Source: Macrostomum lignano
Taxonomy: Eukaryota
Length of the DNA: 64,000 bases
Assembly: GCA_002269645.1 (NCBI GenBank)
Contig: NIVC01001238.1
Coordinates: 248,001 to 312,000, forward strand
Direction of reading: 5' to 3'
Shown here: piece after piece, positions 2,434-22,020 of the stretch
How positions within the stretch are numbered: position 1 is the stretch's first letter
How the letters are laid out: each line of letters starts with the position of its first letter
Program-made: the position numbers and the translations under genes
Notes under the pieces: generated by a model
Database searches by the model: none
What the model was told of the DNA's origin: nothing
The model's input: only the letters and a program-made list of their open reading frames with translations

Positions 2434-4200
2434 ATGGTACTCAGACAGCCCGCCATACTAAGCTGTTTACTGGCCGTCATCGCTTGCTACATCATTACTA
2501 CTACAGCCGACTGCGAGGAAGTCAGCAATGCGAATAGGGTAATAATCAGGTATCCACCATCTAGATGGATCCGGTACGGAGGCAACGCCAAGAGCATGTC
2601 GAGACGGATCAGGATCGGAGGCAACGCCAAGAGCATGTCGAGACGGATCAGGATCGGAGGCAACGCCAAGAGCATGTCTAGAAGGATCAGGATCGGAGGC
2701 AACGCCAAGAGCATGTCGAGACGGATCAGGATCGGAGGCAACGCCAAGAGCATGTCGAGAAGGATCAGGATCGGAGGCAACGCCAAGAGCATGTCGAGAC
2801 GGATCAGGATCGGAGGCAACGCTAAGAGCATGTCGAGAAGGATCAGGATCGGAGGCAACGCCAAGAGCATGTCGAGAAGGATCAGGATCGGAGGCAACGC
2901 CAAGAGCATGTCGAGACGGATCAGGATCGGAGGCAACGCTAAGAGCATGTCGAGACGGATCAGGATCGGAGGCAACGCCAAGAGCATGTCGAGACGGATC
3001 AGGATCGGAGGCAACGCCAAGAGCATGTCTAGAAGGATCAGGATCGGAGGCAACGCCAAGAGCATGTCTAGAAGGATCAGGATCGGAGGCAAAGCCAAGA
3101 GCATGTCGAGACGGATCAGGATCGGAGGCAACGCCAAGAGCATGTCGAGACGGATCAGGATCGGAGGCAACGCCAAGAGCATGTCGAGACGGATCAGGAT
3201 CGGAGGCAACGCCAAGAGCATGTCGAGACGGATCAGGATCGGAGGCAACGCCAAGAGCATGTCGAGAAGGATCAGGATCGGAGGCAACGCTAAGAGCATG
3301 TCGAGACGGATCAGGATCGGAGGCAACGCCAAGAGCATGTCTAGAAGGATCAGGATCGGAGGCAACGCTAAGAGCATGTCGAGACGGATCAGGATCGGAG
3401 GCAACGCCAAGAGCATGTCGAGAAGGATCAGGATCGGAGGCAACGCTAAGAGCATGTCGAGACGGATCAGGATCGGAGGCAACGCCAAGAGCATGTCGAG
3501 AAGGATCAGGATCGGAGGCAATGCCAAGAGCATGTCGAGAAGGATCAGGATCGGAGGCAACGCCAAGAGCATGTCGAGAAGGATCAGGATCGGAGGCAAC
3601 GCTAAGAGCATGTCGAGACGGATCAGGATCGGAGGCAACGCCAAGAGCATGTCGAGACGGATCAGGATCGGAGGCAACGCCAAGAGCATGTCGAGAAGGA
3701 TCAGGATCGGAGGCAACGCCAAGAGCATGTCGAGAAGGATCAGGATCGGAGGCAACGCCAAGAGCATGTCGAGACGGATCAGGATCGGAGGCAACGCCAA
3801 GAGCATGTCGAGAAGGATCAGGATCGGAGGCAACGCCAAGAGCATGTCGAGACGGATCAGGATCGGAGGCAACGCCAAGAGCATGTCGAGAAGGATCAGG
3901 ATCGGAGGCAACGCCAAGAGCATGTCGAGACGGATCAGGATCGGAGGCAACGCCAAGAGCATGTCGAGACGGATCAGGATCGGAGGCAACGCCAAGAGCA
4001 TGTCGAGACGGATCAGGATCGGAGGCAACGCCAAGAGCATGTCGAGACGGATCAGGATCGGAGGCAACGCCAAGAGCATGTCGAGACGGATCAGGATCGG
4101 AGGCAACGCCAAGAGCATGTCGAGACGGATCAGGATCGGAGGCAACGCCAAAAGCATGTCGAGACGGATCAGGATCGGAGGCAACGCCAAGGGTATCTAA
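2434..4200 (+). CDS. Secreted precursor protein with 41 tandem GGNAKSMSRRIRI repeats (588 aa)
   Basis: ATG at 2434 (gcaATGg) gives a hydrophobic signal peptide (MVLRQPAILSCLLAVIACYIITTTADC), a short pro-region, 41 x 13 aa, then GGNAKGI*. Unit variation is almost all synonymous (CGG/AGG, GCC/GCT, TCG/TCT, AAC/AAT, AAG/AAA), with one N>K at 3091-3093. Confidence 0.85.
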   Translation: MVLRQPAILSCLLAVIACYIITTTADCEEVSNANRVIIRYPPSRWIRYGGNAKSMSRRIRIGGNAKSMSRRIRIGGNAKSMSRRIRIGGNAKSMSRRIRIGGNAKSMSRRIRIGGNAKSMSRRIRIGGNAKSMSRRIRIGGNAKSMSRRIRIGGNAKSMSRRIRIGGNAKSMSRRIRIGGNAKSMSRRIRIGGNAKSMSRRIRIGGNAKSMSRRIRIGGKAKSMSRRIRIGGNAKSMSRRIRIGGNAKSMSRRIRIGGNAKSMSRRIRIGGNAKSMSRRIRIGGNAKSMSRRIRIGGNAKSMSRRIRIGGNAKSMSRRIRIGGNAKSMSRRIRIGGNAKSMSRRIRIGGNAKSMSRRIRIGGNAKSMSRRIRIGGNAKSMSRRIRIGGNAKSMSRRIRIGGNAKSMSRRIRIGGNAKSMSRRIRIGGNAKSMSRRIRIGGNAKSMSRRIRIGGNAKSMSRRIRIGGNAKSMSRRIRIGGNAKSMSRRIRIGGNAKSMSRRIRIGGNAKSMSRRIRIGGNAKSMSRRIRIGGNAKSMSRRIRIGGNAKSMSRRIRIGGNAKSMSRRIRIGGNAKSMSRRIRIGGNAKGI

Positions 4201-4791: not shown

Positions 4792-4847
4792 TTTAGAGAG
4801 TAGAGTTTTTTTAATTAAAGCTTTTTAACGCCAGGAAAACTAAAAAA

Positions 4848-7800
4848 ATCATAAAAGCGTCATGTAAAAAATCATAGAAGCGTCATGTAAAAAGCATAGA
4901 AGTGTCATGTAAAAAATCGTGGAAGCATCATGTAAAAAGCATAGAAGCGTCATGTAAAAAATCATAGAAGCGTCATGTAAACAATCATAGAAGCGTCATG
5001 TAAACAATCATAGAAGCGTCATGTAAACAATCATAGAAGCGTCATGTAAAAAATCGTAGAAGCGTCATGAAAAAATCATTAAAGCGTCATGTAAAAATCA
5101 TAGAAGAGTCATGTAAAAATCATAGAAGCATCGTGTAAACAATCATAGAAGCGTCATGTAAAAAATCGTAAGAGCGTAATATAAAAATCATAGAAGCGTC
5201 ATTTAAAAAATCATAGAGGCGTCATATAAAAATCAAAAAAACGTCATTTAAAAAATCATAGAAGCGTCATGTAAACAATCATAGAAGCGTCATGTAAACA
5301 ATCATAGAAGCGTCATGTAAAAAATCATAGAAGCGTCATGTAAACAATCATGGAAGCGTCATGTAAACAATCATAGAAGCGTAATGTAAAAATCATAGTA
5401 GCGTCATGTAAAAAATCATAGAAGCGTCATGTAAAAAGCATAGAAGCGTCATGTAAAAAATCATAGAAGCGTCATGTAAACAATCATAGAAGCGTCATGT
5501 AAAAATCATAGAGGTGTCATGTAAAAATCATTGAAGCGTCCTGCAGAAATCGTAGAAGCGTCATGAAATAATCATAGAAGCGTCATGTAAAAAATCAAAG
5601 AAGCGTCATGTAAAAAATCATAGAAGCGTCATGTAAAAAATCATAGAAGCATCGTGTAAACAATCATAGAAGCGTCATGTAAAAAATCATAGAAGCGTCA
5701 TGTAAAAAATCATAGAAGCGTCATCTAAAACATCATAAAAGCGTCATGTAAAAAATCGTAGAAGCGTCATTTAAAAAATCATAGAAGCGTCATATAAACA
5801 ATCATAGAAGCGTCATGTAAACAATCATAGAAGCGCCATGTAAACAATCATAGAAGCGCCATGTAAACAATCATAGAAGCTTCATGTAAACAATCATAGA
5901 AGCGTCATGTAAACAATCATAGAAGAGTCATGTAAAAAATCATAGAAGCGTCATGTAAAAAATAATAGAAGCGTCGTGTAAACAATCATAGAAGCGTCAT
6001 GTAAACAATCAGAGAAGCGTCATGTAAAAAATCATAAAAGAGTCATGTAAAAAATCGTAGAAGCGTCATATAAAAATCATAGAAGCGTCATGTAAAAAAT
6101 CATAGAAGCGTCATGTAAACAATCATAGAAGCGTCATGTAAACAATCATAGAAGCGTCATGTAAGAAATCATAGAAGCGTCATGTAAAAAATCGTAGAAG
6201 TGTCATGTAAAAAATCGTGGAAGCATCATGTAAAAAGCATAGAAGTGTCATGTAAAAAATAATAGAAGCGTCGTGTAAACAATCATAGAAGCGTCATGCA
6301 AACAATCAGAGAAGCGTCATGTAAAAAATCATAAAAGAGTCATGTAAAAAATCGTAGAAGCGTCATATAAAAATCATAGAAGCGTCATTTAAAAAATCAT
6401 AGAAGCGTCATGTAAACAATCATAGAAGCGTCATGTAAACAATCATAGAAGCGTCATGTAAACAATCATGGAAGCGTCATGTAAGAAATCATAGAAGCGT
6501 CATGTAAAAAATCGTCATGAAGTGTCATGTAAAAAATCGTGAAGCATCATGTAAAAAGCATAGAAGTGTCATGTAAAAAATCATAGAAGCGTCATGTAAA
6601 CAATCATAGAAGCGTCATGTAAACAATCATAGAAGCGTCATGTAAACAATCATAGAAGCTTCATGTAAAAAATCGTAGAAGCGTCATGAAAAAATCATTA
6701 AAGCGTCATGTAAAAATCATAGAAGCGTCATGTAAAAAATCATAGAAGCATCGTGTAAACAATCATAGAAGCGTCATGTAAAAAATCGTAAGAGCGTAAT
6801 ATAAAAATCATAGAAGCGTCATTTAAAAAATCATAGAGGCGTCATATAAAAATCAAAAAACGTCATTTAAAAAATCATAGAAGCGTCATGTAAACAATCA
6901 TAGAAGCGTCATGTAAACAATCATAGAAGCGTCATGTAAAAAATCATAGAAGCGTCATGTAAACAATCATGGAAGCGTCATGTAAACAATCATAGAAGAG
7001 TCATGTAAAAAATCATAGAAGCGTCATGTAAAAAATCATAGAAGCGTCATGTAAACAATCATAGAAGCGTCATATAAAAAATCATAGAAGCGTCATGTAA
7101 AAAATCATAGAAGCGTCATATAAACAATCATAGAAGCGTCATGTAAACAATTATAGAAGCGTCATGTAAAAATCATAGAAGCGTCATGTAAAAAATCATA
7201 GAAGCGTCGTGTAAACAATCATAGAAGCGTCATGTAAAAAATCATAGAAGCGTCATGTAAAAAATCATAGAAGCGTCATCTAAAACATCATAAAGCGTCA
7301 TGTAAAAAATCGTAGAAGCGTCATTTAAAAAATCATAGAAGCGTCATATAAACAATCATAGAAGCGTCATGTAAACAATCATAGAAGCGCCATGTAAACA
7401 ATCATAGAAGCGTCATGTAAACAATCATAGAAGCGTCATATAAAAATCATAGAAGCGTCATTTAAAAAATCATAGAAGCGTCATGTAAACAATCATAGAA
7501 GCGTCATGTAAACAATCATAGAAGCGTCATGTAAAAAATCATAGAAGCGTCATGTAAACAATCATGAAGCGTCATGTAAAAAATTATAGAAGCGTCATGC
7601 AAACAATCATAGAAGCGTCATGTAAACAATCATAGAAGCTTCATGTAAAAAATCATAGAAGCGTCATGTAAAAAATCATAGAAGCGTCATCTAAAACATC
7701 ATAAAGCGTCATGTAAAAAATCGTAGAAGCGTCATTTAAAAAATCATAGAAGCGTCATATAAACAATCATAGAAGCGTCATGTAAACAATCATAGAAGCG

Positions 7801-10800
7801 CCATGTAAACAATCATAGAAGCGTCATGTAAAAAGCATAGAAGCGTCATGTAAACAATCATAGAAGCGTCATGTAAACAATCATAGAAGCGTCATGTAAA
7901 AATCATAGAGGTGTCATGTAAAAATCATTGAAGCGTCCTGCAGAAATCGTAGAAGCGTCATGAAATAATCATAGAAGCGTCATGTAAACAATCATGAAGC
8001 GTCATGTAAAAATCATAGAAGCGTCATGTAAAAAATCATAGAAGCATCGTGTAAACAATCATAGAAGCGTCATGTAAAAATCGTAAGAGCGTAATATAAA
8101 AATCATAGAAGCGTCATTAAAAAATCATAGAGGCGTCATATAAAAATCAAAAACGTCATTTAAAAAATCATAGAAGCGTCATGTAAACAATCATAGAAGC
8201 GTCATGTAAACAATCATAGAAGCGTCATGTAAACAATCATAGAAGCGTCATGTAAACAATCATAGAAGCGTCATGTAAAAATCATAGAAGCGTCATGTAA
8301 AAATCATAGAAGCGTCATGTAAAAATCATAGAAGCGTCATGTAAAAAATCATAGAAGCGTCATGTAAAAAATCATAGAAGCATCGTGTAAACAATCATAG
8401 AAGCGTCATGTAAAAAATCGTAGAAGCGTCATTTAAAAAATCATAGAAGCGTCATATAAACAATCATAGAAGCGTCATGTAAACAATCATAGAAGCGTCA
8501 TGTAAAAATCATAGAAGCGTCGTGTAAACAATCATAGAAGCGTCATGTAAAAATCGTAAGAGCGTATATAAAAATCATAGAAGCGTCATTAAAAAATCAT
8601 AGAAGCGTCATGTAAACAATCATAGAAGCGTCATGTAAACAATCATAGAAGCGTCATGTTAAAAATCATAGAAGCGTCATGTAAAAATCATAGAAGCGTC
8701 ATGTAAACAATCATAGAAGCGTCATTTTAAAAATCATAGAAGCGTCATGTAAAAATCATATAAGCGTCATGTAAACAATCATAGAAGCGTCATGTAAACA
8801 ATCATAGAAGCGTCATGTAAAAAATCGTAGAAGCGTCATGAAAAAATCATTAAAGCGTCATGTAAAAATCATAGAAGCGTCATGTAAAAAATCATAGAAG
8901 CATCGTGTAAACAATCATAGAAGCGTCATGTAAACAATCATAGAAGCGTCATTAAAAAATCATAGAAGCGTCATATAAAAATCAAAAGCGTCATTTAAAA
9001 ATCATAGAAGCGTCATGTAAACAATCATAGAAGCGTCATGTAAACAATCATAGAAGCGTCATGTAAAAAATCATAGAAGCGTCATGTAAACAATCATGAA
9101 GCGTCATGTAAACAATCATAGAAGAGTCATGTAAAAAATCATAGAAGCGTCATGTAAAAAGCATAGAAGCGTCATATAAACAATCATAGAAGCGTCATAT
9201 AAAAATCATAGAAGCGTCATGTAAAAATCATAGAAGCGTCATGTAAAAATCATAGAAGCGTCATGTAAAAATCATAGAAGCGTCATGTAAAAATCATAAA
9301 GCATCGTGTAAACAATCATAGAAGCGTCATGTAAAAAATCATAGAAGCGTCATGTAAAAAATCATAGAAGCGTCATATAAACAATCATAGAAGCGTCATG
9401 TAAACAATCATAGAAGCGTCATGTAAAAATCATAGAAGCGTCATGTAAAAAATCATAGAAGCGTCATGTAAACAATCATAGAAGCGTCATGTAAAAATCA
9501 TAGAAGCGTCATGTAAAAATCATAGAAGCGTCATCTAAAAATCATAAAGCGTCATGTAAAAAATCATAGAAGCGTCATTAAAAATCATAGAAGCGTCATA
9601 TAAACAATCATAGAAGCGTCATGTAAACAATCATAGAAGCGCATGTAAACAATCATAGAAGCGTCATGTAAACAATCATAGAAGCGTCATATAAAAATCA
9701 TAGAAGCGTCATTAAAAAATCATAGAAGCGTCATGTAAACAATCATAGAAGCGTCATGTAAACAATCATAGAAGCGTCATGTAAAAAATCATAGAAGCGT
9801 CATGTAAACAATCATAGAAGCGTCATGTAAAAATTATAGAAGCGTCATGCAAACAATCATAGAAGCGTCATGTAAACAATCATAGAAGCGTCATGTAAAA
9901 AATCATAGAAGCGTCATGTAAAAAATCATAGAAGCGTCATCTAAAACATCATAAAGCGTCATGTAAAAAATCGTAGAAGCGTCATTTAAAAAATCATAGA
10001 AGCGTCATATAAACAATCATAGAAGCGTCATGTAAACAATCATAGAAGCGCATGTAAACAATCATAGAAGCGTCATGTAAAAATCATAGAAGCGTCATGT
10101 AAACAATCATAGAAGCGTCATGTAAACAATCATAGAAGCGTCATGTAAAAATCATAGAAGCGTGTCATGTAAAAATCATAGAAGCGTCCTGCAAAATCGT
10201 AGAAGCGTCATGAAAAATCATAGAAGCGTCATGTAAACAATCATGAAGCGTCATGTAAAAATCATAGAAGAGTCATGTAAAAAATCATAGAAGCATCGTG
10301 TAAACAATCATAGAAGCGTCATGTAAAAATCGTAAGAGCGTAATATAAAAATCATAGAAGCGTCATTTAAAAAATCATAGAGCGTCATATAAAAATCAAA
10401 ACGTCATTTAAAAAATCATAGAAGCGTCATGTAAACAATCATAGAAGCGTCATGTAAACAATCATAGAAGCGTCATGTAAACAATCATAGAAGCGTCATG
10501 TAAACAATCATAGAAGCGTCATGTAAAAAATCATAGAAGCGTCATGTAAAAATCATAGAAGCGTCATGTAAAAATCATAGAAGCGTCATGTAAAAAATCA
10601 TAGAAGCGTCATGTAAAAAATCATAGAAGCATCGTGTAAACAATCATAGAAGCGTCATGTAAAAATCATAGAAGCGTCATGTAAAAAATCATAGAAGCGT
10701 CATCTAAAACATCATAAAAGCGTCATGTAAAAATCATAGAAGCGTCATTAAAAAATCATAGAAGCGTCATATAAACAATCATAGAAGCGCCATGTAAACA

Positions 10801-11190
10801 ATCATAGAAGCGCCATGTAAAAATCATAGAAGCATCGTGTAAACAATCATAGAAGCGTCATGTAAAAAATCGTAAGAGCGTAATATAAAAATCATAGAAG
10901 CGTCATTTAAAAAATCATAGAAGCGTCATGTAAACAATCATAGAAGCGTCATGTAAACAATCATAGAAGCGTCATGTTAAAAATCATAGAAGCGTCATGT
11001 AAAAAATCATAGAAGCGTCATGTAAACAATCATAGAAGCGTCATTTTAAAAATCATAGAAGCGTCATGTTAAAAATCATATAAGCGTCATGTAAACAATC
11101 ATCGAAGCGTCATCTAAAAATCATAGAAGCGTCATGTAAAAAATCATAGAATCGTCATGAAAAAATCATAGAAGCGTCATTTAAAAACTA
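4848..11190. repeat. 23-bp satellite array in H1 (consensus AAACAATCATAGAAGCGTCATGT), roughly 275 units
   Basis: Direct reading of tandem units; variant blocks recur as higher-order duplications. Confidence 0.97.
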
Positions 11191-11279
11191 ATGAAAGTGT
11201 CATTTAAAAAATTAAGAAGCATCATAGTAGAATAAAAGAAGCGTCATGTCAGACATGAAAGGTGTCATGGAAAAATTAA

Positions 11280-12914: not shown

Positions 12915-15830
12915 CTAAACATAAAAGAAGCGCAATGTCAAACATACAAGAGCCACCATGTCAAACATAAAACAGACACCATGTCGAACATTAAAGAGCC
13001 ACCATGTCAAACATAAAAGAACCACCATATCAAACATTAAAGAGCCACAATTTCAAAAATTAAAGAGCCACCATGTCGAAGATTAAAGTGCTACCATGTC
13101 AAACATAGAAAGCCACCATGTCAAACATTAAAGAGCCACAATGTCAAACACAAAAGAGCCACCATTTCAAACCTTAAAAAGCCACCATGTCGAACATTAA
13201 AGAGCCACCATGTCGAACATAAAAGAGCCACCATGTCGAACATAAAAGAGCCACCATATCAAACATAAAAGAACTACCATGTCAAACATTAAAGAGCCAC
13301 CATGTCGAACATTAAAGAGCCAACATGTCAAACATAAAACAGACACAAATAAAAACATTAAAGAGCCACCATGTCGAACATTAAAGAGCCACCATGTCAA
13401 ACATTAAAGAGCCACCATGTCAAACATAAAACAGAGCCACCATTTCGAAAAGTAAAGAGCCACCATGTCAAACATTAAAGAGCCACCATGTCGAACATAA
13501 AAGGGCCACCATGTCAAATATTAAAGAGCCACCATGTCAAACATTAAAGAGCCACCATGCCAAACATTAAAGAGCCACCATGCCAAACAAAAAAGAGCCA
13601 CCATGTCGAACATAAAAGAGCCACCATGTCAACCATAAAAGAACCACCACGTCAAGCATATACATTACTCCATGTCAAACATAAAAGAGCCACCATGTCA
13701 AACATTAAAGAGCCACCATGCCAAACATTAAAGAGCCACCATGTCAAACATTAAAGAGCCAGCATGTCAAACATAAAAGAGCCACCATGTCGAACATTAT
13801 TGAGCCACCATGTCAGACATTAAAGAGCCACCATGCCAAACATAAAAGAGCCACCATATCAAACATAAAAAAGCCACCATGTCAACCATAAAAGAACCAC
13901 CACGTCAAGCATATACATTACTCCATGTCAAACATTAAAGAGCCACCATGTCAAATATTAAAGAGCCACCATGTTAAACATAAAAGAGCCACCATGTCAA
14001 ACATTAGAGCCACCATGTTGAACATTAAAGAGCCACCATGTCAAACATAAAAGAGCCACCATGTCGAACATTAAAGAGCCACCATATCAAACATAGAAGA
14101 GCCACCATGTCAAGCATATATGACTCCATGTCCAACATTAAAGAGCCACCATGTGGAACATTAAGGAGCCACCATGTCAAAAATTAAAGAGCCCCCCATA
14201 TCGAACATAGAAGAGCCACCATGTGGAACATTAAAGAGCCACCATGTCAAACATTAAAGAGCCTACATATCAAACATTAAAAAGTTACCATGTCAAACAT
14301 TAAAGAGCCACCATGTTGAACATTATTGAGCCACCATGTCAGACATTAAAGAGCCACCATGCCAAACATAAAAGAGCCACCATATCAAACATAAAAGAAC
14401 TACCATGTCAAACATTAAAGAGCCACCATGTCGAACATTATTGAGCCACCATGTCGAACATCAAAGAGCCACCATGCCAAACATAAAAGAGCCGCCATGT
14501 CAAACATAAAAAAGCCACCATGTCAACCATAAAAGAACCACCACGTCAAGCATATACATTACTCCATGTCAAACATTAAAGATCCACCATGCCAAACATA
14601 AAAGAACCGCCATGTCAAACATAAAAAAGCCACCATGTCAACCATAAAAGAACCACCACGTCAAGCATATACATTACTCCATGTCAAACATTAAAGATCC
14701 ACCATGCCAAACATTAAAGAGCCACCATGTCAAACATAAAAGAGCCACCATGTTAAACATAAAAGAGCCACCATGTCAAACATTAGAGCCACCATGTTGA
14801 ACATAAAAGAGCCACCATGCCAAACATTAAAGAGCCACCATGTCAAACATTAAAGAGCCACCATGTCAAACATAAAAGAGCCACCATGTCAAACATTAAA
14901 GAGCCACCATGTCAAATATTAGAGCCACCATGTTGAACATTAAAGAGCCACCATGTCAAACATAAAAGAGCCACCATGTCGAACATTAAAGAGCCACCAT
15001 ATCAAACATAGAAGAGCCACCATGTCAAGCATATATGACTCCATGTGCAACATTAAAGAGCCACCATGTGGAACATTAAGGAGCCACCATGTCAAAAATT
15101 AAAGAGCCCCCCATATCAAACATAGAAGAGCCACCATGTGGAACATTAAAGAGCCACCATGTCAAACATTAAAGAGCCTACATATCAAACATTAAAAAGT
15201 TACCATGTCAAACATAAAAGAGCCACCATGTCAAACATTAAAGAGCCACCATGCCAAACATTAAAGAGCCACCATGTCAAATATTAAAGAGCCACCATGT
15301 CAAACATAAAAGAACCACCATGTAAAGCATATATGTGACTCCATGTCTAACATTAAAGAGCCACCATGTAGAACATTAAAGAGCCACCATGTCAAACATA
15401 TAAGAGACTTTATTTCAAACATAAAAGAGCCACCATGTTGAACATTAAAGAGCTACCATGTCAAACATTAAAGAGCCACCATATCAAACATTAAAGTTCC
15501 ATCGTGTCGAACATTAAAGAGCCACCATGTCGAACATATAAGAGACTTTATTTCAAACATAAAAGAGCCAACCATTTCGAACATGAAAGAACCACCATGT
15601 CGAACATAAAAGAGCCACCATTTCTAATATAAAAGAGCCACCATGTCGAACATAAAGGAGCCACTATGTCGAACATAAAAGAGCCACCATGTTGAAACTT
15701 AAAGAGCCAACCTGTAAAACATTTAAAAGATTCACCATGTCAAACATATAAGTGACTTCATTTCAAACATAAAAGAGCCACCATGTCAAACATAAAAGAT
15801 ACACAATTTCAAACGTAAAAGTGAGCGAAT
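12915..15830. repeat. 23-bp satellite array in H2 (consensus CAAACATTAAAGAGCCACCATGT), roughly 125 units
   Basis: Direct reading of tandem units. Confidence 0.97.
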
Positions 15831-15884
15831 TTTAAAGGAGCCACTATAATGCTAAGGAAATTGTCGCACTAGCTACTTATTGTC

Positions 15885-16047
15885 TGGTGGATGCTTGCTA
15901 TTTGGGGATGCTATCTATCTGGGGGATGCTTGCTAGCTTGTATCTTGGGGATGCTTGCTATCTGGGGGATGCTTGCTATCTGGGGGATGCTTGCTATCTG
16001 GGGATGCTTGCTATTTGGGTGATGCTTGCTATCTGGGGGATGCTTGC
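15885..16047. repeat. 18-bp minisatellite GGGGGATGCTTGCTATCT, left part
   Basis: Tandem units interrupted by the LINE; the array resumes at 21820. Confidence 0.92.
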
Positions 16048-16345
16048 GCACGCGAAGGTGTATTCAGCACGCCAGTGAAGTATGAGACAGACCAGGCCTA
16101 AGGGCTACGGACTACGGTCTGCGATGCTTCACGCCTGCCCCTATATTCAGCAGGTCAAGGCTGGAGAGGGAGGTCTGCACCCGCTATTTGCCACTGGCAG
16201 CCGCAGACCCCCCCCCCCTCACGCTGTTTCACAAGTCGACCCAGGGTACTCGTCCCCGCGTGTGTTCAAGGCAGACCCTAGGGCTGCTGGACAGACTGGG
16301 CTCCGACGCTGGCGACCCATCCAGTGGCTTCGGCCGAATTTGGGT
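16048..16345 (+). ncRNA. HDV-like self-cleaving ribozyme (nested double pseudoknot) at the retrotransposon 5' end
   Basis: P1 GCACGCG 16048-54 / CGCGTGT 16257-63 with G1-U wobble; P2 ACCCA 16239-43 / TGGGT 16341-45; P3 GGG 16244-46 / CCC 16254-56; L3 UACUCGU; P1.1 A16248-U16265 and C16249-G16264; J4/2 CGAA from C16335. Confidence 0.82.
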
Positions 16346-16526
16346 ATGCGGGTCTGGCTTGCCAGCCTGCAGGCCGTGGTACTGCTTAACGTACCCCTAA
16401 TGCCTAAGGTGTTTGACCGTGCCGATGGGCTGGAAGGCCGGGGGTTGTCCGGTCGCTAGCGGTCCTTTTCTTTTTCTTCTTTCCTCTTTCTTTTGTGACT
16501 CAGCTCACTCCTTCCCGCTTTCAGCT

Positions 16527-17993
16527 ATGGCGTCATCCGCCTCTTTAACCCCCGCTGAAGCCGGGGCCCCGGCAACTCCGGCCGGTGACTCTGGCACCAG
16601 CGCCGCCCCACCGGGGGCAGATGGGCTTGCCGCCGGCTCGGCTGGTGACATGCCCGCACGCGCAACCGGGCCCTCCGCTGAAGCCCGACGCACCCGCAAC
16701 CAACGCCGCAACGAGCGGCGACGGCGACTACGGGGTACTGCGGGCCGGCCACCGGCGGAAGGGGAACCTAGGGAGGGCGAGGCTGCTGTTGGGCCGAAAG
16801 GAACCACAGCAACCCCTGCCCCCCAGGATACAACCCCCGCTGGTGAGCCACCCAGTATACCTGCTACAAGCGCGGCCGGGCCTTCGGGAACCGCCGCCAC
16901 CAACTACGCCTCAAAGGTCAAGCTCCAACCGGCGGTCATCGTCTTCGGGGAAGAGCAGGACCTCACGGCCGACGAGCTCGACAGTGCCTGGCGCACCATC
17001 GATGCTGCGCTCATCGACCAGCTCCTGGCGGGCCGCCCTGTGAGCGTGGTCAAGTCTGCCAAGACCGACGGCTGCATCTTCATCTGGTGCAGCTCGGAGG
17101 AGAGCAGCCGCAATCTACGCGAGCTTCTGCCAAAGCTGAACTGGCCCAAGAAGCTCGGCAAGCTCGTCTTCGCCAGCGAGGGCGAACGACAGAAGACCCA
17201 GCGCTTTCGCGTCTGGATCCCGGCCGGCAGTGCCATTAAGTCCGGAGATCAGCTTAGGCAAATATTGCTAAAGCTGCACCCCGACCTTAAGGTCAACGGG
17301 CTCCTACACCACGCCACTTCCCGCAAGGAGAAGGGGGCTACGGTGATCCTAGGGCTCTCTGATGACTGGGCTAAGCGCTTGCCGCCTAAGTCCACAATTC
17401 ATATTGGTCTGACTCAGCTGACCATCCTCCGTTGCGAGGAGCGGAAAGCTGATGAAGCCAAGAATGCCAAAGCTTCCGAAACCGGAACTGGGGCCCAGGC
17501 TCCTCCGGCAAAGAAGCCGAGGCAAACGGCCGATCCTATGCCCGGTAAGGCAGTTCGCGCTGCTGAAACCGGAAATCGCAATCGCAGACCCGCCAGGAGC
17601 ACCCGGAGGTCCGGCCTGATCCAGCGCGCGCTGGACCAGGCCAAGAACCTTCGTGCGCATCGTGAGCGGGCCCGCGCTTCTCGCGCTCCACCCCAACAGC
17701 CAGAAGGCCAGACTCTAAGCGGGGAGGCTCCGACCGACTGGTTCGAGTCTGTGACTCACCAGGAGGCTGGCGCCACCCGCATCGACCTGACCGACGAGGC
17801 AGAGGGGACGGGCAGTGACAGCACCGAAGCACGCAGGAGAGGCGACGGTAACGTCCACGCTGGGCTCACGTCCGCGGAGGACTCCACAGCCACCCTAACT
17901 GCTGAGGACGCTGAAACTCCCATGGAGGTCTGCGGGTCACCCACCACTGAAAAGGAGGAGGATGACCTGCTCAACGATTCCCCAACTGCGTGA
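16527..17993 (+). CDS. Retrotransposon ORF1 (gag-like nucleic-acid chaperone)
   Basis: Open frame with ATG at 16527 (alternative ATG 16425). Ala/Pro/Arg-rich N-terminus, central globular region (FRVWIP...LHPDL), acidic C-terminus. No CCHC knuckle seen. Lies directly upstream of the pol ORF. Confidence 0.85.
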   Translation: MASSASLTPAEAGAPATPAGDSGTSAAPPGADGLAAGSAGDMPARATGPSAEARRTRNQRRNERRRRLRGTAGRPPAEGEPREGEAAVGPKGTTATPAPQDTTPAGEPPSIPATSAAGPSGTAATNYASKVKLQPAVIVFGEEQDLTADELDSAWRTIDAALIDQLLAGRPVSVVKSAKTDGCIFIWCSSEESSRNLRELLPKLNWPKKLGKLVFASEGERQKTQRFRVWIPAGSAIKSGDQLRQILLKLHPDLKVNGLLHHATSRKEKGATVILGLSDDWAKRLPPKSTIHIGLTQLTILRCEERKADEAKNAKASETGTGAQAPPAKKPRQTADPMPGKAVRAAETGNRNRRPARSTRRSGLIQRALDQAKNLRAHRERARASRAPPQQPEGQTLSGEAPTDWFESVTHQEAGATRIDLTDEAEGTGSDSTEARRRGDGNVHAGLTSAEDSTATLTAEDAETPMEVCGSPTTEKEEDDLLNDSPTA

Positions 17994-17995
17994 TA

Positions 17996-20900
17996 ATGAT
18001 CAGCAACCAGGGAATCCATTGCCTGCAGATTAATCTGCAGCACTGCGTCGCAGCCTCGGTCAACCTTATGCGTTACGCCGAGCTCGACAAGCCGGGGCTC
18101 ATCCTCGTCCAGGAACCCTGGACTCTCAGAGGTAAGCCTCAAAACGCCCCTGCTGGCTACAATTGTTTTTATACTTACCCTCGCGAGGCCAACCAGCCTC
18201 CCAGAGCTTGCATCTTTGCGAGCAAAACGCTCAGTGCGTGGCTCAGATCGGACCTGTCCAACAGGGACATCTGCGTCATCCAATCCGAGGACCTTCTTCC
18301 TGGGAAGACCACCCTCATTGCCTCGGTTTACCTACCAGGCGATGCTGCGGTCGTCCCCAGAGCCCTCGCTACGCTGGTAGAGCTCTGCTCTGCCAAAAAC
18401 TACGAGCTCATGGTTGCCGGCGACATCAACGCCCACCACACTCACTGGGGCAGCACTGGCATTAATCAGAGAGGCGAAGACCTCCTAGCCTACGTTGCCT
18501 CTACGACCCTCGAGTTCTGCAACTCTGGGTCCACCCCTACCTTTGACAACGGACGGTGGTCGGAGGTGATCGACGCTACGCTCGCAACGCCCAGACTCTA
18601 CCAGAGTATTGGGGCGTGGCGGGTGCTTCCAGTGTCCTCACTATCGGATCACAAGTTCATCTCCTTCAACCTAATGGCCGCGCGTAGCGCAACTCGTGTT
18701 ATGTGGAGACGGAACGCCAGAAATACTGATTGGGAAACCTTCGGGCTCGCCCTGAAGGAATTCCATCGGTCTCCTGGCCAACCATTCACGATCACGTCGT
18801 GCCGAGAGGCGGATGAGTGCGCGACTGTTTTGACAGAGACGCTAACCGCCGCCTTTGAGGCGTCCTGCCCTTTAAAAGCCTATAAAGGGAAAAAATCGGC
18901 GCCGTGGTGGAATCCCGAGCTCGGCAACCTCCGTCGCAGGGCTAAGAGACTCCACCGCAGAGCAACTAAAACTAAGAGCCCTGCAGACCAAACCGCCTAT
19001 CATGAAGCAATTCATGAGTTTAAAAGGCAGGTTAGGAATGCAAAGGCTCAAAAATGGCGACAATACTGTGAGGAGCTAGAGGGCTCACGCCCCACCTCCA
19101 GAGTTGTGAAAGCGCTCACGCTGGACAAAATGTCTAAGCTCTCCTCGGTCAAACGCACCGACGGTACGTCCACGGACAACCCAGGGGAAACGCTTGATGT
19201 AATGCTCACTGCGTTTTTCCCTAACGAGCCAGCTAACCAGACCACTCCGGATCACTCGGAGGGAGGTCACGCGCTGGCTGCATCTATCATCACGGAGGAC
19301 CGCATTGTGAGAGCGGCAAATTCCTTCAAGCCTTTCAAAGCCCCAGGACCCGACGGCATTGTACCGGCCCTTCTAAGAGAGGCGGTTAAATGCCCAGGCT
19401 TCCTGCGCAAACTTTGCAGCCTTCTTCGGGCATGCATCACGCTTGGTTATGTCCCGCAGGCATGGACCGAGGCAAAGGTGATCTTTATCCCTAAGCCAGG
19501 CCGCCCGGACTACCATTCTATCAAATCCTTCAGACCGATCAGCTTGACCTCCTCCCTGGTCAAGCTGATGGAGAGACTGGTGCTTTGGCGCCTTCTCTCT
19601 GTTGAGCTGAAGAACAAACCTCTCAGCGAGAACCAGCACGCTTTTCGGGCGGGTCGCTCCACTGAAAGCGCGCTGCACGTCCTGGTCGATAAACTCGAGA
19701 AGGCCGTGCTTGGTAGTGGCTTTGCTCTGGGGATCTTCCTGGACATCATTGGCGCCTTCGATAACGTCCTCTTTGAGGCGTTCCGAAGAGCTCTTTGTGA
19801 GAGGCTAACGCACTCACATCTCACCAGATGGATCATGTACATGATCAGCCATCGCACGGCCACCGCCAGTCTGCTGGGCTACCAGAGGACGGTCCCCGTC
19901 TGCAAAGGTAGCCCGCAAGGTGGGGTGCTGTCTCCAGTTCTCTGGAATATGGTCATCGATGAGCTCCTCCGGGATGTTCGGCCTGACCCCATTCTGAAAG
20001 TTGGATATGCGGACGATGTCACCGCGGTGGCATCTGGTCCGTCCCCTGATACCCTCAGGGACCTTCTTCAGAACTTCATCTACGCTGCTGAGCAATGGGC
20101 GGACCGCTGTGGTTTAAGGCTCTCTGAGACTAAGACCGCAGCGATCATGTTCACCAGCAGGACCAAGTGGCAGATTCGGCCGCTCACGCTTTACGGAAGG
20201 GAAATCCCCTTCTGCAAGCAGACTAAATGTCTGGGTATTACCCTGGACCACAGGCTGAACTGGTCTCCCCACGTTCAAACAAAAGCCAAAAAGGCCTTCG
20301 CAGTCCTCGCGCAATTGCGCAGGGCCGTCGGCACCACCTGGGGGCTCACCCCCAAGCGCCTCTGGTGGATCTACACTGCAATGGTTAGGCCCGCTATCTC
20401 GTATGGCGGCCTGATCTGGGCTAGCGCCCTGCAGATAAAGACCTGTCTAGAGGCTCTCAGGAGAGCGCAAGGGCGCGCTTGTCGCACGATCATGAGCGCC
20501 CCTCCGTCTGCTCCTTACGATGGCCTCAACGCCTTCCTCAACATTCCTCCGCTGGACATCTTTGTCCGCAGGGAAGCGGCTAAGACTGCCCGCCGTCTAG
20601 CTGACGCTGGCATTCGAATCCAGCCCCATAGGGCCATGGCTAAGCGCAAGCTTCTGCCCCACGCTGACCTCTGCCTCAAGGACTTGAGAGACAGCGGCGG
20701 GCTCCACGTCCTATCTGACGGCGAACCCCGCACTCTCAACCTCTTTCAGCGCTACAAGGTCACCATCCCCTCTAGGGATGCTGCCAATGACCACTGGAAT
20801 TTCCAGGAGGTCCATTGCTACACGGACGGATCCATCAAAGACGGTCGCGCCGGCTTTGGGGTCTGCATCATCATCAACGGCCGCGTAATTGCCACGCATG

Positions 20901-21700
20901 CCCAGCACACTGGTAGACTCTCCACAGTCTTCCAGAACGAAGTCCTTGCCATCAGCTCTTGCGCTGCAGAGCTAAACGCCAAGGTTACGAGAGGAAAGAC
21001 TATTGTCATCCACTCCGACAGCCAAGCGGCCTTACAGGCCCTTTGCCACACCACAACGAACTCCCGGACAGTCGCCGACTGCGCCCGGCAGCTCAACCTC
21101 CTGGCCAGAAGCAATACTGTCAGGCTGAAGTGGATCCCAGGGCACGCAGGGTTTCCGGGGAACGAGCTGGCAGACACCCTCGCCAAGAGGGGCGGCTCTG
21201 GCTCTTTTTTCGGCCCTGCCCCCCTGGTCCCTATGCCCTTGACAGTCATCAATCGTCAGATCGACGACTGGGCTGACTCCCTCCACAGGGACAGATGGGC
21301 GGGCACCCAAAACTGCCGGCAATCTCGTGCCGCGGTTCCTTGCCCGTCTCACAGGCTCAGAAACATCCTTCTGAACCAGAATCGGAAGGATATTCGAGCC
21401 CTTGTCATGACCCTTACCGGCCATGGCTACCTCGCCAGGCACTGCTTCCTCCGAGGCGACCTCGAGAGCGAAATTTGCCCCTTTTGCGAGTGCGACAATG
21501 AAGATGCTCAGCACTTTGTCTGTCACTGCCCTTTCTTTAACAGAGACCGGCTACGCTACCTCGGGCCGAACCCGTCCATTGACGAGGTTTGCCAGCCCGA
21601 CAGCATCCCACGGCTCATCCAGTTCCTTCGGGCGACTAGACGAGCCAGTTTCTTCCCAACGGAAGATCACGCTGCAGGACGGACCGGCGGACCACCCTGA
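17996..21700 (+). CDS. Retrotransposon ORF2: AP endonuclease, reverse transcriptase, RNase H, C-terminal CCHC
   Basis: APE motifs QINL, VQEPW, GDINAHH, SDH; RT motifs KAPGPDG, FRPISL, QHAFR, PQGGVLSP, YADD; RNase H YTDGS, E, SDSQ, WIPGH.GN..AD; CPFC-x7-H-x4-C. No stops or frameshifts. Confidence 0.97.
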   Translation: MISNQGIHCLQINLQHCVAASVNLMRYAELDKPGLILVQEPWTLRGKPQNAPAGYNCFYTYPREANQPPRACIFASKTLSAWLRSDLSNRDICVIQSEDLLPGKTTLIASVYLPGDAAVVPRALATLVELCSAKNYELMVAGDINAHHTHWGSTGINQRGEDLLAYVASTTLEFCNSGSTPTFDNGRWSEVIDATLATPRLYQSIGAWRVLPVSSLSDHKFISFNLMAARSATRVMWRRNARNTDWETFGLALKEFHRSPGQPFTITSCREADECATVLTETLTAAFEASCPLKAYKGKKSAPWWNPELGNLRRRAKRLHRRATKTKSPADQTAYHEAIHEFKRQVRNAKAQKWRQYCEELEGSRPTSRVVKALTLDKMSKLSSVKRTDGTSTDNPGETLDVMLTAFFPNEPANQTTPDHSEGGHALAASIITEDRIVRAANSFKPFKAPGPDGIVPALLREAVKCPGFLRKLCSLLRACITLGYVPQAWTEAKVIFIPKPGRPDYHSIKSFRPISLTSSLVKLMERLVLWRLLSVELKNKPLSENQHAFRAGRSTESALHVLVDKLEKAVLGSGFALGIFLDIIGAFDNVLFEAFRRALCERLTHSHLTRWIMYMISHRTATASLLGYQRTVPVCKGSPQGGVLSPVLWNMVIDELLRDVRPDPILKVGYADDVTAVASGPSPDTLRDLLQNFIYAAEQWADRCGLRLSETKTAAIMFTSRTKWQIRPLTLYGREIPFCKQTKCLGITLDHRLNWSPHVQTKAKKAFAVLAQLRRAVGTTWGLTPKRLWWIYTAMVRPAISYGGLIWASALQIKTCLEALRRAQGRACRTIMSAPPSAPYDGLNAFLNIPPLDIFVRREAAKTARRLADAGIRIQPHRAMAKRKLLPHADLCLKDLRDSGGLHVLSDGEPRTLNLFQRYKVTIPSRDAANDHWNFQEVHCYTDGSIKDGRAGFGVCIIINGRVIATHAQHTGRLSTVFQNEVLAISSCAAELNAKVTRGKTIVIHSDSQAALQALCHTTTNSRTVADCARQLNLLARSNTVRLKWIPGHAGFPGNELADTLAKRGGSGSFFGPAPLVPMPLTVINRQIDDWADSLHRDRWAGTQNCRQSRAAVPCPSHRLRNILLNQNRKDIRALVMTLTGHGYLARHCFLRGDLESEICPFCECDNEDAQHFVCHCPFFNRDRLRYLGPNPSIDEVCQPDSIPRLIQFLRATRRASFFPTEDHAAGRTGGPP

Positions 21701-21741
21701 CCGGCCCCACGCCTCTGCCTGTCTGCGGGCCTTCAGGGGCT

Positions 21742-21771
21742 AGCGGAATGGGCGACCCTCGCCTCCCCGCT
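21742..21771 (+). other. 3' UTR stem-loop of the retrotransposon (candidate ORF2 recognition signal)
   Basis: AGCGG 21742-46 / CCGCT 21767-71 enclosing GGCGA-CCC-TCGCC, upstream of the simple-repeat tail. Confidence 0.5.
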
Positions 21772-21819
21772 GTGTCTACGGACCACCCTGCAGCTAAGTC
21801 AAGTAAGTAAGTAAGTCAA

Positions 21820-22020
21820 GGGGGATGCTTGCTATCTGGGGATGCTTGCTATTTGGGTGATGCTTGCTATCTGGGGATGCTTGCTATCTGGGGATGCTTG
21901 CTATCCGGGGGATGCTTGCAATCTGGGGGATGCTTGCTATCTGGGGGATGCTTGCTATCTGGGTGATGCTTGCTATCTGGGGGATGCTTTCTCTCTGGGT
22001 GATGCTTGCTGTCTTGGGAT
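21820..22020. repeat. 18-bp minisatellite GGGGGATGCTTGCTATCT, right part
   Basis: Same unit as 15885-16047. Confidence 0.92.

Follow-up and report, generated by a model that had tools for sequence, protein, structure and literature searches.

Several retrotransposons that lack long terminal repeats (non-LTR elements) and are transcribed from foreign promoters have their 5′ ends defined by a self-cleaving ribozyme of the hepatitis delta virus (HDV)-like class, and R2, R4, Dong, baggins, and L1Tc carry such a ribozyme at the 5′ terminus (PMC3774820, PMC3185411). Among flatworms the class has a precedent in planarian R2. The two strands of the P1 helix (P1 and P1′) lie anywhere between 23 nt and over 700 nt apart in R2 ribozymes, and those of silkmoths have J1/2 joining loops of 216–498 nt and cleave in vitro (PMC3774820). 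The 5′ segment of L1Tc doubles as an internal promoter (PMC3383444), and in large HDV-like ribozymes a peripheral J1/2 helix that pinches P1 and P2 together speeds the reaction, as measured experimentally, by up to about 1000-fold (PMC4908430). Here we analyzed a 64,000-nt stretch of contig NIVC01001238.1 from the flatworm Macrostomum lignano (hereafter the window; positions are counted from its first letter), in which a GC-rich block at 16048–21819 (+) is a complete, intact non-LTR retrotransposon. Judging from its sequence and that of its relatives, the very 5′ end of this element (16048–16307) quite likely encodes a self-cleaving ribozyme with an HDV-like double pseudoknot.

The comparison set comprises three sequences: the window element, L001 (a Logan contig of 6492 bp from run ERR14788467, whose second open reading frame, ORF2, is 61% identical to that of the window), and L002 (a JGI metagenome contig whose ORF1 is 62% identical to the window ORF1). 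The contig behind P0002 (57% identity) was left out of this set. The 5′ untranslated regions (UTRs) of the three can be aligned along their length. L002 is cut about 100 nt upstream of P3, which puts the 5′ strand of P1 and the J1/2 block off the contig; with no P1 5′ strand visible in L002, the strand order P1-J1/2-P2-P3-L3-P3′-P1′-J1/4-P4-J4/2-P2′ was found in all three (Table 1 gives the window coordinates). P1 opens with base 1 of the element and comprises 7 bp including a G16048•U16263 wobble (duplex free energy −10.4). In L001 it is a 6-bp helix in which GCCUGC at nt 1–6 pairs with that contig's own P1′, GCAGGC at 189–194; relative to the window, two pairs are changed on both sides with pairing kept, and the +1 base is G in both sequences that show it. 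Loop L3 reads UUCUCGU in L002 and UCUCCGU in L001, giving the pattern U-N-N-Y-C-G-U. Both pairs of P1.1, A16248-U16265 and C16249-G16264 in the window and C-G and U-A in L001, are compensatory. The original prediction, made from the window sequence alone, had drawn this part of the core as a 7-bp P1 from G16048 with its G-U wobble, a GGG/CCC P3, a UACUCGU L3, and an A-U plus C-G P1.1, all of which we found in the sequence. It had also called the core covariant, and P1, P1.1, and P2 do change in a compensatory way against relatives at about 61–62% protein identity.

P2, P4, and J4/2 were placed by comparison of the same three sequences. P2 has 10 pairs, of which three are compensatory, and 100% of its cells are paired (n = 3 sequences); it is built from arms of 4 + 4 bp in the window and 6 + 4 bp in L001 and L002, separated by a 1 × 3 internal loop. 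The P4 position is taken by an 8-bp hairpin in L002 and by an 11-bp hairpin of wholly different sequence in L001. A cytosine directly follows P4 in all three sequences (C16292, C143 of L002, and C228 of L001), the sole C conserved in register, and C16292 is the candidate catalytic cytosine.

Between P1 and P2 lies a large peripheral domain to which the minimum free energy (MFE) folds assign one and the same architecture in L001 and the window. Its closing helix begins 3 nt after P1 and ends 2 nt before P2, a placement for which the accelerating pinch has been demonstrated by experiment in large HDV-like ribozymes. The two hairpins originally drawn here (16075–83/16124–32 and 16166–78/16203–20) are present in the MFE fold, and J1/2 is long and self-folding, as had been claimed, measuring 180 nt on the revised map and not 184; its length has precedents in the R2 ribozymes cited above. 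It is conceivable, if doubtful, that this insert, with its near-invariant 28-nt motif, has a regulatory function and gates self-cleavage, perhaps as a platform on which ORF1 or ORF2 protein or a host factor stabilizes the pinch, or that the corresponding DNA doubles as an internal promoter, like Pr77 of L1Tc. Should J1/2 gate cleavage, a flatworm LINE (long interspersed nuclear element) lineage not surveyed before would have an HDV-like ribozyme under the control of a protein or ligand.

How much of this could arise by chance depends strongly on what is counted. The HDV-like descriptor alone is weak, finding about five cores per 128 kb (both window strands), and a relaxed motif with a P1 partner anywhere occurred in 17.5% of dinucleotide-shuffled window 5′UTRs and in 45% of those of L001. 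When the P1 partner had to lie at nt 1, the motif appeared in 6 of 3000 shuffles of the window (0.2%) and 22 of 3000 of L001 (0.7%); full partners of P1′ exist at 8 of 5766 element positions (0.0014) and 16 of 6487 L001 positions (0.0025). The fold alone is non-significant, and the case rests on its position and on the comparison with relatives. Pairing extends to 87.9% of cells in the model-fitted alignment, versus 33–47% with the partners slid, and the core holds five compensatory pairs, excluding P1 and the re-invented P4. Since only three sequences are available, we take this covariation as suggestive and not as statistical proof.

A number of observations weigh against the ribozyme. One of the three sequences lacks P1, and the start of the L001 contig was taken as the start of the element. 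The G•U wobble of the window is G1-C194 in L001, and the last base of P1′ in L002 is C; P1.1 of L002 has one U·U mismatch beside its C-G pair; and P2 of the window extends for only 4 bp beside P3 before the internal loop. J4/2 has no conserved adenines (CAGAC, CGUG, and CUGC), and in two of the three there is no A after the C. P1′ could also pair elsewhere, since it complements GCACGC at 16067–72 (6 bp, −9.1 kcal/mol) and CACGC at 16220–24 (5 bp, −8.1 kcal/mol), and local complements of P1′ exist in L001 (CCUGC, 151–155) and L002 (GCUCGC, 76–81) too. The expectation that Rfam covariance models would recognize the ribozyme was disappointed: neither the HDV ribozyme model nor those of the HDV-like families matched, at the gathering score over the whole window or at E ≤ 10 over 15800–16600. 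This is weak evidence, because the 180-nt J1/2 insert would probably defeat those models. In distant relatives (L007, L086–L089, and L091–L093, with 30–37% ORF2 identity) and in L094, no core exceeded shuffle expectation in a search with strict and relaxed descriptors and with R1, a covariance model of the core run with filters off; several of these contigs may be without the 5′UTR.

Some of these points are also what would be seen if the 5′UTR were structured for a different purpose, be it to have ORF1 translated independently of a cap, to bind the element's own proteins, or to act as an internal promoter. Its likeness to an HDV ribozyme, including the pairing of the 5′ terminus with an internal segment, would then lead to no cleavage, and the 5′ end would be set by transcription initiation at G16048. 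The J4/2 without conserved adenines, the unconserved wobble, and the missing Rfam match all suit this explanation, as does the fact that the whole 480-nt 5′UTR is alignable at about 61% protein identity and holds more hairpins (16316–45 and beyond) as well as the 28-nt block; some non-LTR elements do have internal promoters, and L1Tc fits both its promoter and its ribozyme into one 77-nt stretch (PMC3383444). We nevertheless consider it unlikely, as the HDV-defining combination (a P1′ right behind GGG-N7-CCC with U1 and G6, a 2-bp P1.1, nested P2 and P4, and a C right behind P4) has been kept via compensatory changes, whereas a promoter or an internal ribosome entry site needs no pairing of the first 6–7 nt with that segment, and the two roles are in any case compatible. 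Chance, by which a GC-rich 5′UTR happened to meet a permissive descriptor, would explain the descriptor matches and the 17–45% of shuffled UTRs with a P1 partner somewhere, but hardly why two independent elements each have the P1 partner at nt 1 and why the core is conserved with five or more compensatory pairs; we find it barely credible.

Two further explanations accept a ribozyme and draw it differently. The original prediction formed P2 from 16239–43 and 16341–45, leaving a 69-nt P4 region, a CGAA J4/2 at 16335–38 with C16335 as the catalytic base and two extra U before P2, and a 3′ limit at 16345. These strands do give a perfect 5-bp ACCCA/UGGGU helix in the window, as the descriptor found, and both are present in L002 as well; CGAA, moreover, is similar to the J4/2 of genomic HDV. 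L001 lacks this pairing, though, having no P2 complement at that position and a perfect UCUGAG at the revised one, and in L002 it would leave AA between P2 and P3. Because UGGGU at 16341–45 pairs with a local ACCCA at 16316–20 in all three sequences (RNAalifold), CGAA and C16335 belong to a separate stem-loop, in which C16335 closes a GGC-UUCG-GCC hairpin. The first drawing is therefore very unlikely to be the right one, and it gives way to the J4/2 at 16292–16296 with an end near 16307. A C16335U mutant would probably yield a false negative; the corrected helix map points to C16292 instead and to a 3′ boundary near 16310. Slightly less probable still, in our estimate, is cleavage through another P1 partner, at G16067 or C16220, which would make the ribozyme compact, with a short J1/2, and the 5′-most 19–172 nt a leader. 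The alternative complements in the window and the local ones in L001 and L002 speak for it. Yet those partners fall short of the terminal P1 in both length and stability, the terminal P1 being the most stable partner of P1′ (−10.4 vs. −9.1 and −8.1 in the window, −13.6 vs. −9.2 in L001), they occupy non-homologous positions, and they lie inside the J1/2 closing helix; retrotransposition would discard whatever lies upstream of a cleavage site, yet L001 conserves 16055–16219 and the window copy begins at 16048. The compact ribozyme with CACGC 16220–24 as P1 was rejected as weaker, not positionally conserved, and situated within that closing helix. On balance, an HDV-like 5′-processing ribozyme with its P1 at the element terminus is the probable assignment.

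The sequence of the P1 5′ strand recurs 19 nt downstream (GCACGCC, 16067–16073) and again as CACGC just before P2. J1/2 of L001 is flanked by analogous GCAGG (11–15) and CCUGC (151–155) segments, and pairings that are mutually exclusive with P1/P1′ are possible. As speculation, these alternative pairings could represent competing inactive conformers.

In the proposed mechanism, the element would be transcribed within a longer RNA begun upstream. That such an element may need no promoter of its own and may cut itself out of host read-through transcripts was likewise the inference of the original prediction. The ribozyme would fold co-transcriptionally, P1 would place the 16047/16048 phosphodiester in the core made of P3/L3, P1.1, P2, and P4, and C16292, as the first J4/2 base, would act as general acid/base. 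Scission would free an RNA that starts at G16048 with a 5′-OH and keeps the ribozyme at its 5′ end, and this RNA could serve both as mRNA and as template for target-primed reverse transcription. As the ribozyme would be kept on the RNA 5′ end, full-length copies should start at the same G and regenerate it. The original prediction had expected as much of other copies. Nucleotide 1 of L001 is indeed the predicted cleavage-site nucleotide, with the start of the contig assumed to be that of the element, and on the 3′ side the contig extends about 530 nt into flanking sequence; no second copy was found within the window by blastn or tblastn. If ERR14788467 is an RNA-seq run, the start of L001 at the first nucleotide of P1 would be a processed 5′ end. 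By analogy, the cleaved, structured 5′UTR may possibly have a role in translation.

The closest described systems differ from this locus in instructive ways. R2 of Drosophila, silkmoths, and planaria resembles it in having a 5′-end double pseudoknot that processes a non-LTR element from a co-transcript, with a P1 of 6–7 bp whose P1′ strand follows P3/L3 without a gap, a variable P4, a long and mismatch-tolerant P2, a J1/2 of hundreds of nucleotides that is in part needed for activity, and few conserved bases beyond the catalytic C and the L3 residues (PMC3774820). R2 has a single ORF and a restriction-like endonuclease, is specific for 28S ribosomal DNA (rDNA), and is co-transcribed by RNA polymerase I, many of its ribozymes cleaving upstream in the 28S sequence; the window element, in contrast, has two ORFs, APE and RNase H domains, a satellite insertion site, and a P1 made wholly of element sequence. 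Its J1/2 is also strongly conserved in sequence, as the 28-nt block attests, whereas the J1/2 loops of silkmoth R2 share little sequence. Closer in the type of element are baggins of Drosophila and the Pr77 ribozymes of trypanosomatid L1Tc/ingi (PMC3185411, PMC3383444, PMC4035085), where, as predicted here, cleavage falls at nt 1 of a dispersed APE/RNase H LINE and the ribozyme is retained. Those ribozymes are compact, with a short J1/2 (L1TcRz fits within 77 nt), belong to another host phylum and lineage, and have no sequence similarity to ours that is detectable with Rfam. The drz-Agam-2 family of Anopheles likewise has a helix, P1.2, that closes J1/2 beside P1 and P2 (PMC4908430), as do both the window and L001, but there it is a simple helix and here a 158–180-nt multi-hairpin domain with a conserved apical motif. 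Among flatworms, Perere-3 of Schistosoma mansoni is a LINE with a 5′ self-cleaving ribozyme that abuts the target-site duplication (TSD); it differs in carrying a twister variant, in belonging to the single-ORF RTE clade, and in drawing P1 partly from the TSD (PMC8501958).

A literature search turned up no publication that connects Macrostomum with a ribozyme of this kind. Judged by Rfam and the literature, neither of which gave a match, it is plausible that the lineage is undescribed. What is new is a two-ORF, RNase H-bearing, Macrostomum-type lineage with a conserved multi-hairpin J1/2 in a dispersed element, missed by curated models. As current Rfam models miss it, such ribozymes are probably under-annotated. 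The family adds a recently active member in a flatworm model organism, and its naturally large, sequence-conserved J1/2 in a non-rDNA element could be used to study the pinch-activation model and the regulation of cleavage.

Table 1. Features of the predicted ribozyme and of its host element, in window coordinates unless a relative is named.
Feature	Position	Strand	Remarks
Upstream flank, 5′ copy of putative 13-bp TSD, GGGGGATGCTTGC	16035–16047	+	Last satellite bases
5′UTR	479 nt from 16048	+	Precedes ORF1
P1 5′ strand, GCACGCG	16048–16054	+	Predicted cleavage 16047/16048; G16048 is element base 1
J1/2 peripheral domain	16055–16234	+	180 nt (158 nt in L001); closed, three hairpins
J1/2 closing helix	16058–68/16223–32; L001 11–19/154–162	+	MFE folds
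J1/2 hairpin H1	16075–16132; L001 27–78	+	3 compensatory pairs
Near-invariant 28-nt block, GTATGAGAnnGACCAGGCCyAAGGGCTA	16080–16107	+	H1 apex; window/L001 alignment
J1/2 hairpin H2	16133–55; L001 80–95	+	MFE folds
J1/2 hairpin H3	16163–16218; L001 106–151	+	MFE folds
P2 5′ strand, GUCG-A-CCCA	16235–16243	+	RNAalifold, pair table, pair counts
P3 5′ strand, GGG	16244–16246	+	Invariant in 3/3 sequences
L3, UACUCGU	16247–16253	+	7 nt; U1 and G6 conserved; A16248 and C16249 in P1.1
P3 3′ strand, CCC	16254–16256	+	GGG/CCC invariant
P1 3′ strand (P1′), CGCGUGU	16257–16263	+	Directly after P3; L002 CGCGAGC, L001 GCAGGC
J1/4, GU	16264–16265	+	Pairs with L3 to give P1.1
P4 hairpin	16266–16291	+	U16266-A16291, C16267-G16290, then 16270–77/16281–88
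J4/2, CAGAC	16292–16296	+	C16292, candidate catalytic cytosine
P2 3′ strand, UGGG-CUC-CGAC	16297–16307	+	3′ end of predicted ribozyme, ~16307
P2 in L002			GCCG-A-CCCAAA / UUUGGG-CAA-CGGC
P2 in L001			GCCG-C-CUCAGA / UCUGAG-CAA-CGGC
Separate conserved 5′UTR hairpin, ACCCA...GGCUUCGGCC...UGGGU	16316–16345	+	RNAalifold columns 98–102/124–128, 3/3 sequences
ORF1	16527–17993	+	488 aa, intact; 62% identity to P0080
ORF2	17990–21700	+	Intact, 1236 aa; encodes APE endonuclease, reverse transcriptase, and RNase H, with a Cys/His motif at the C terminus
3′UTR and short (TAAG/TCAAG)n tail	21701–21819	+	Motif CCCTGCAGCTAAGTCAA common to L001
Downstream copy of putative TSD; satellite restart	21820–21832	+	Same 13 bases as 16035–47

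The host element has the make-up of an RNase H-bearing, APE-type LINE: ORF2 with APE, reverse transcriptase, and RNase H domains, an upstream ORF1, a simple-repeat tail, and altered target flanks. The Pfam matches of ORF2 are Exo_endo_phos_2 (1.4e-19), RVT_1 (8e-31), and RNase_H (3.4e-14), whereas ORF1 had no Pfam match at E ≤ 0.001. The element sits in an 18-bp satellite, TCTGGGGGATGCTTGCTA, which stops at 16047 and restarts at 21820 (GGGGGATGCTTGCTATCT...). That the element is intact and that P1 begins at its first base, as originally proposed, agrees with the intact ORFs and with the end of the satellite at 16047. The further claim that P1 comes right after a TSD held for the boundary, which is exact at 16047/16048, and less so for the TSD itself, as the phase of the satellite is equally compatible with a 13-bp TSD or a 5-bp target deletion; G16048 is the first element base under both readings.

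One M. lignano UniRef model matches 43% of the length of ORF2 with 98% identity, many others match ORF2 with 50–79% identity, and the family looks recently active because of the 98% identity. Its nearest named matches are only unannotated or chimeric M. lignano models. Long stretches 49–98% identical to ORF2 are held by the M. lignano UniRef models P0003–P0013, P0020, and P0050, which are of the kinase, leucine-rich repeat, peptidase S8, ankyrin, acyltransferase, and other types; these stretches appear to be copies of the element fused into host gene predictions as an annotation artefact. The M. lignano genome has several subfamilies of the family.

The ORF1 protein search returned a single match, P0080, and a profile of its core domain returned no match; the core domain of the window ORF1 aligns with those of L001–L003. 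ORF1 of distant relatives (30–37% ORF2 identity) matches Pfam DUF4780 (PF16012) at 455–1444 of L088, 1619–3400 of L089, and 930–2633 of L091. An ORF2 profile run against GTDB genome contigs and IMG/VR found only the distant contaminant contigs L007 and L008. The core DNA pattern gave three loci in metagenome contigs, of which L004 and L005 were set aside as bacterial-looking chance matches and L006 for having neither P2, P1.1, nor any ORF context. In viral contigs the core pattern gave 0 loci and the J1/2 block pattern a single match, L090. The only Rfam matches, miRNA-like ones to the G/C-rich H3 hairpin on the minus strand, were spurious and belonged to no ribozyme family.

The 5′UTR past the ribozyme (16308–16526 in the window, 245–600 in L001, and 160–520 in L002) is alignable too, with more conserved hairpins, an example being a CCGGGGrGTwkTCCGG motif near 16440–60, and it may be a translation-related structure. 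A pyrimidine tract at about 16465–16500 is unique to the window copy, other sequence taking its place in the relatives. An ATG-initiated upstream ORF of 125 aa at 16082–16459 overlaps the core of the ribozyme together with its J1/2 domain and the UTR that follows, and is probably fortuitous in such GC-rich sequence.

This copy of the element lies in a satellite-dense region, and unrelated tandem arrays are extremely abundant throughout the window (1–64000). Apart from those of the retrotransposon, most long ORFs are repeat artefacts, whose only Pfam matches are low-complexity or coiled-coil. The arrays include a 39-bp unit at 2563–4191, a 23-bp unit repeated 283 times at 4843–11249, and a 23-bp unit at 12917–15821, and more than 20 others lie between 26 and 64 kb.

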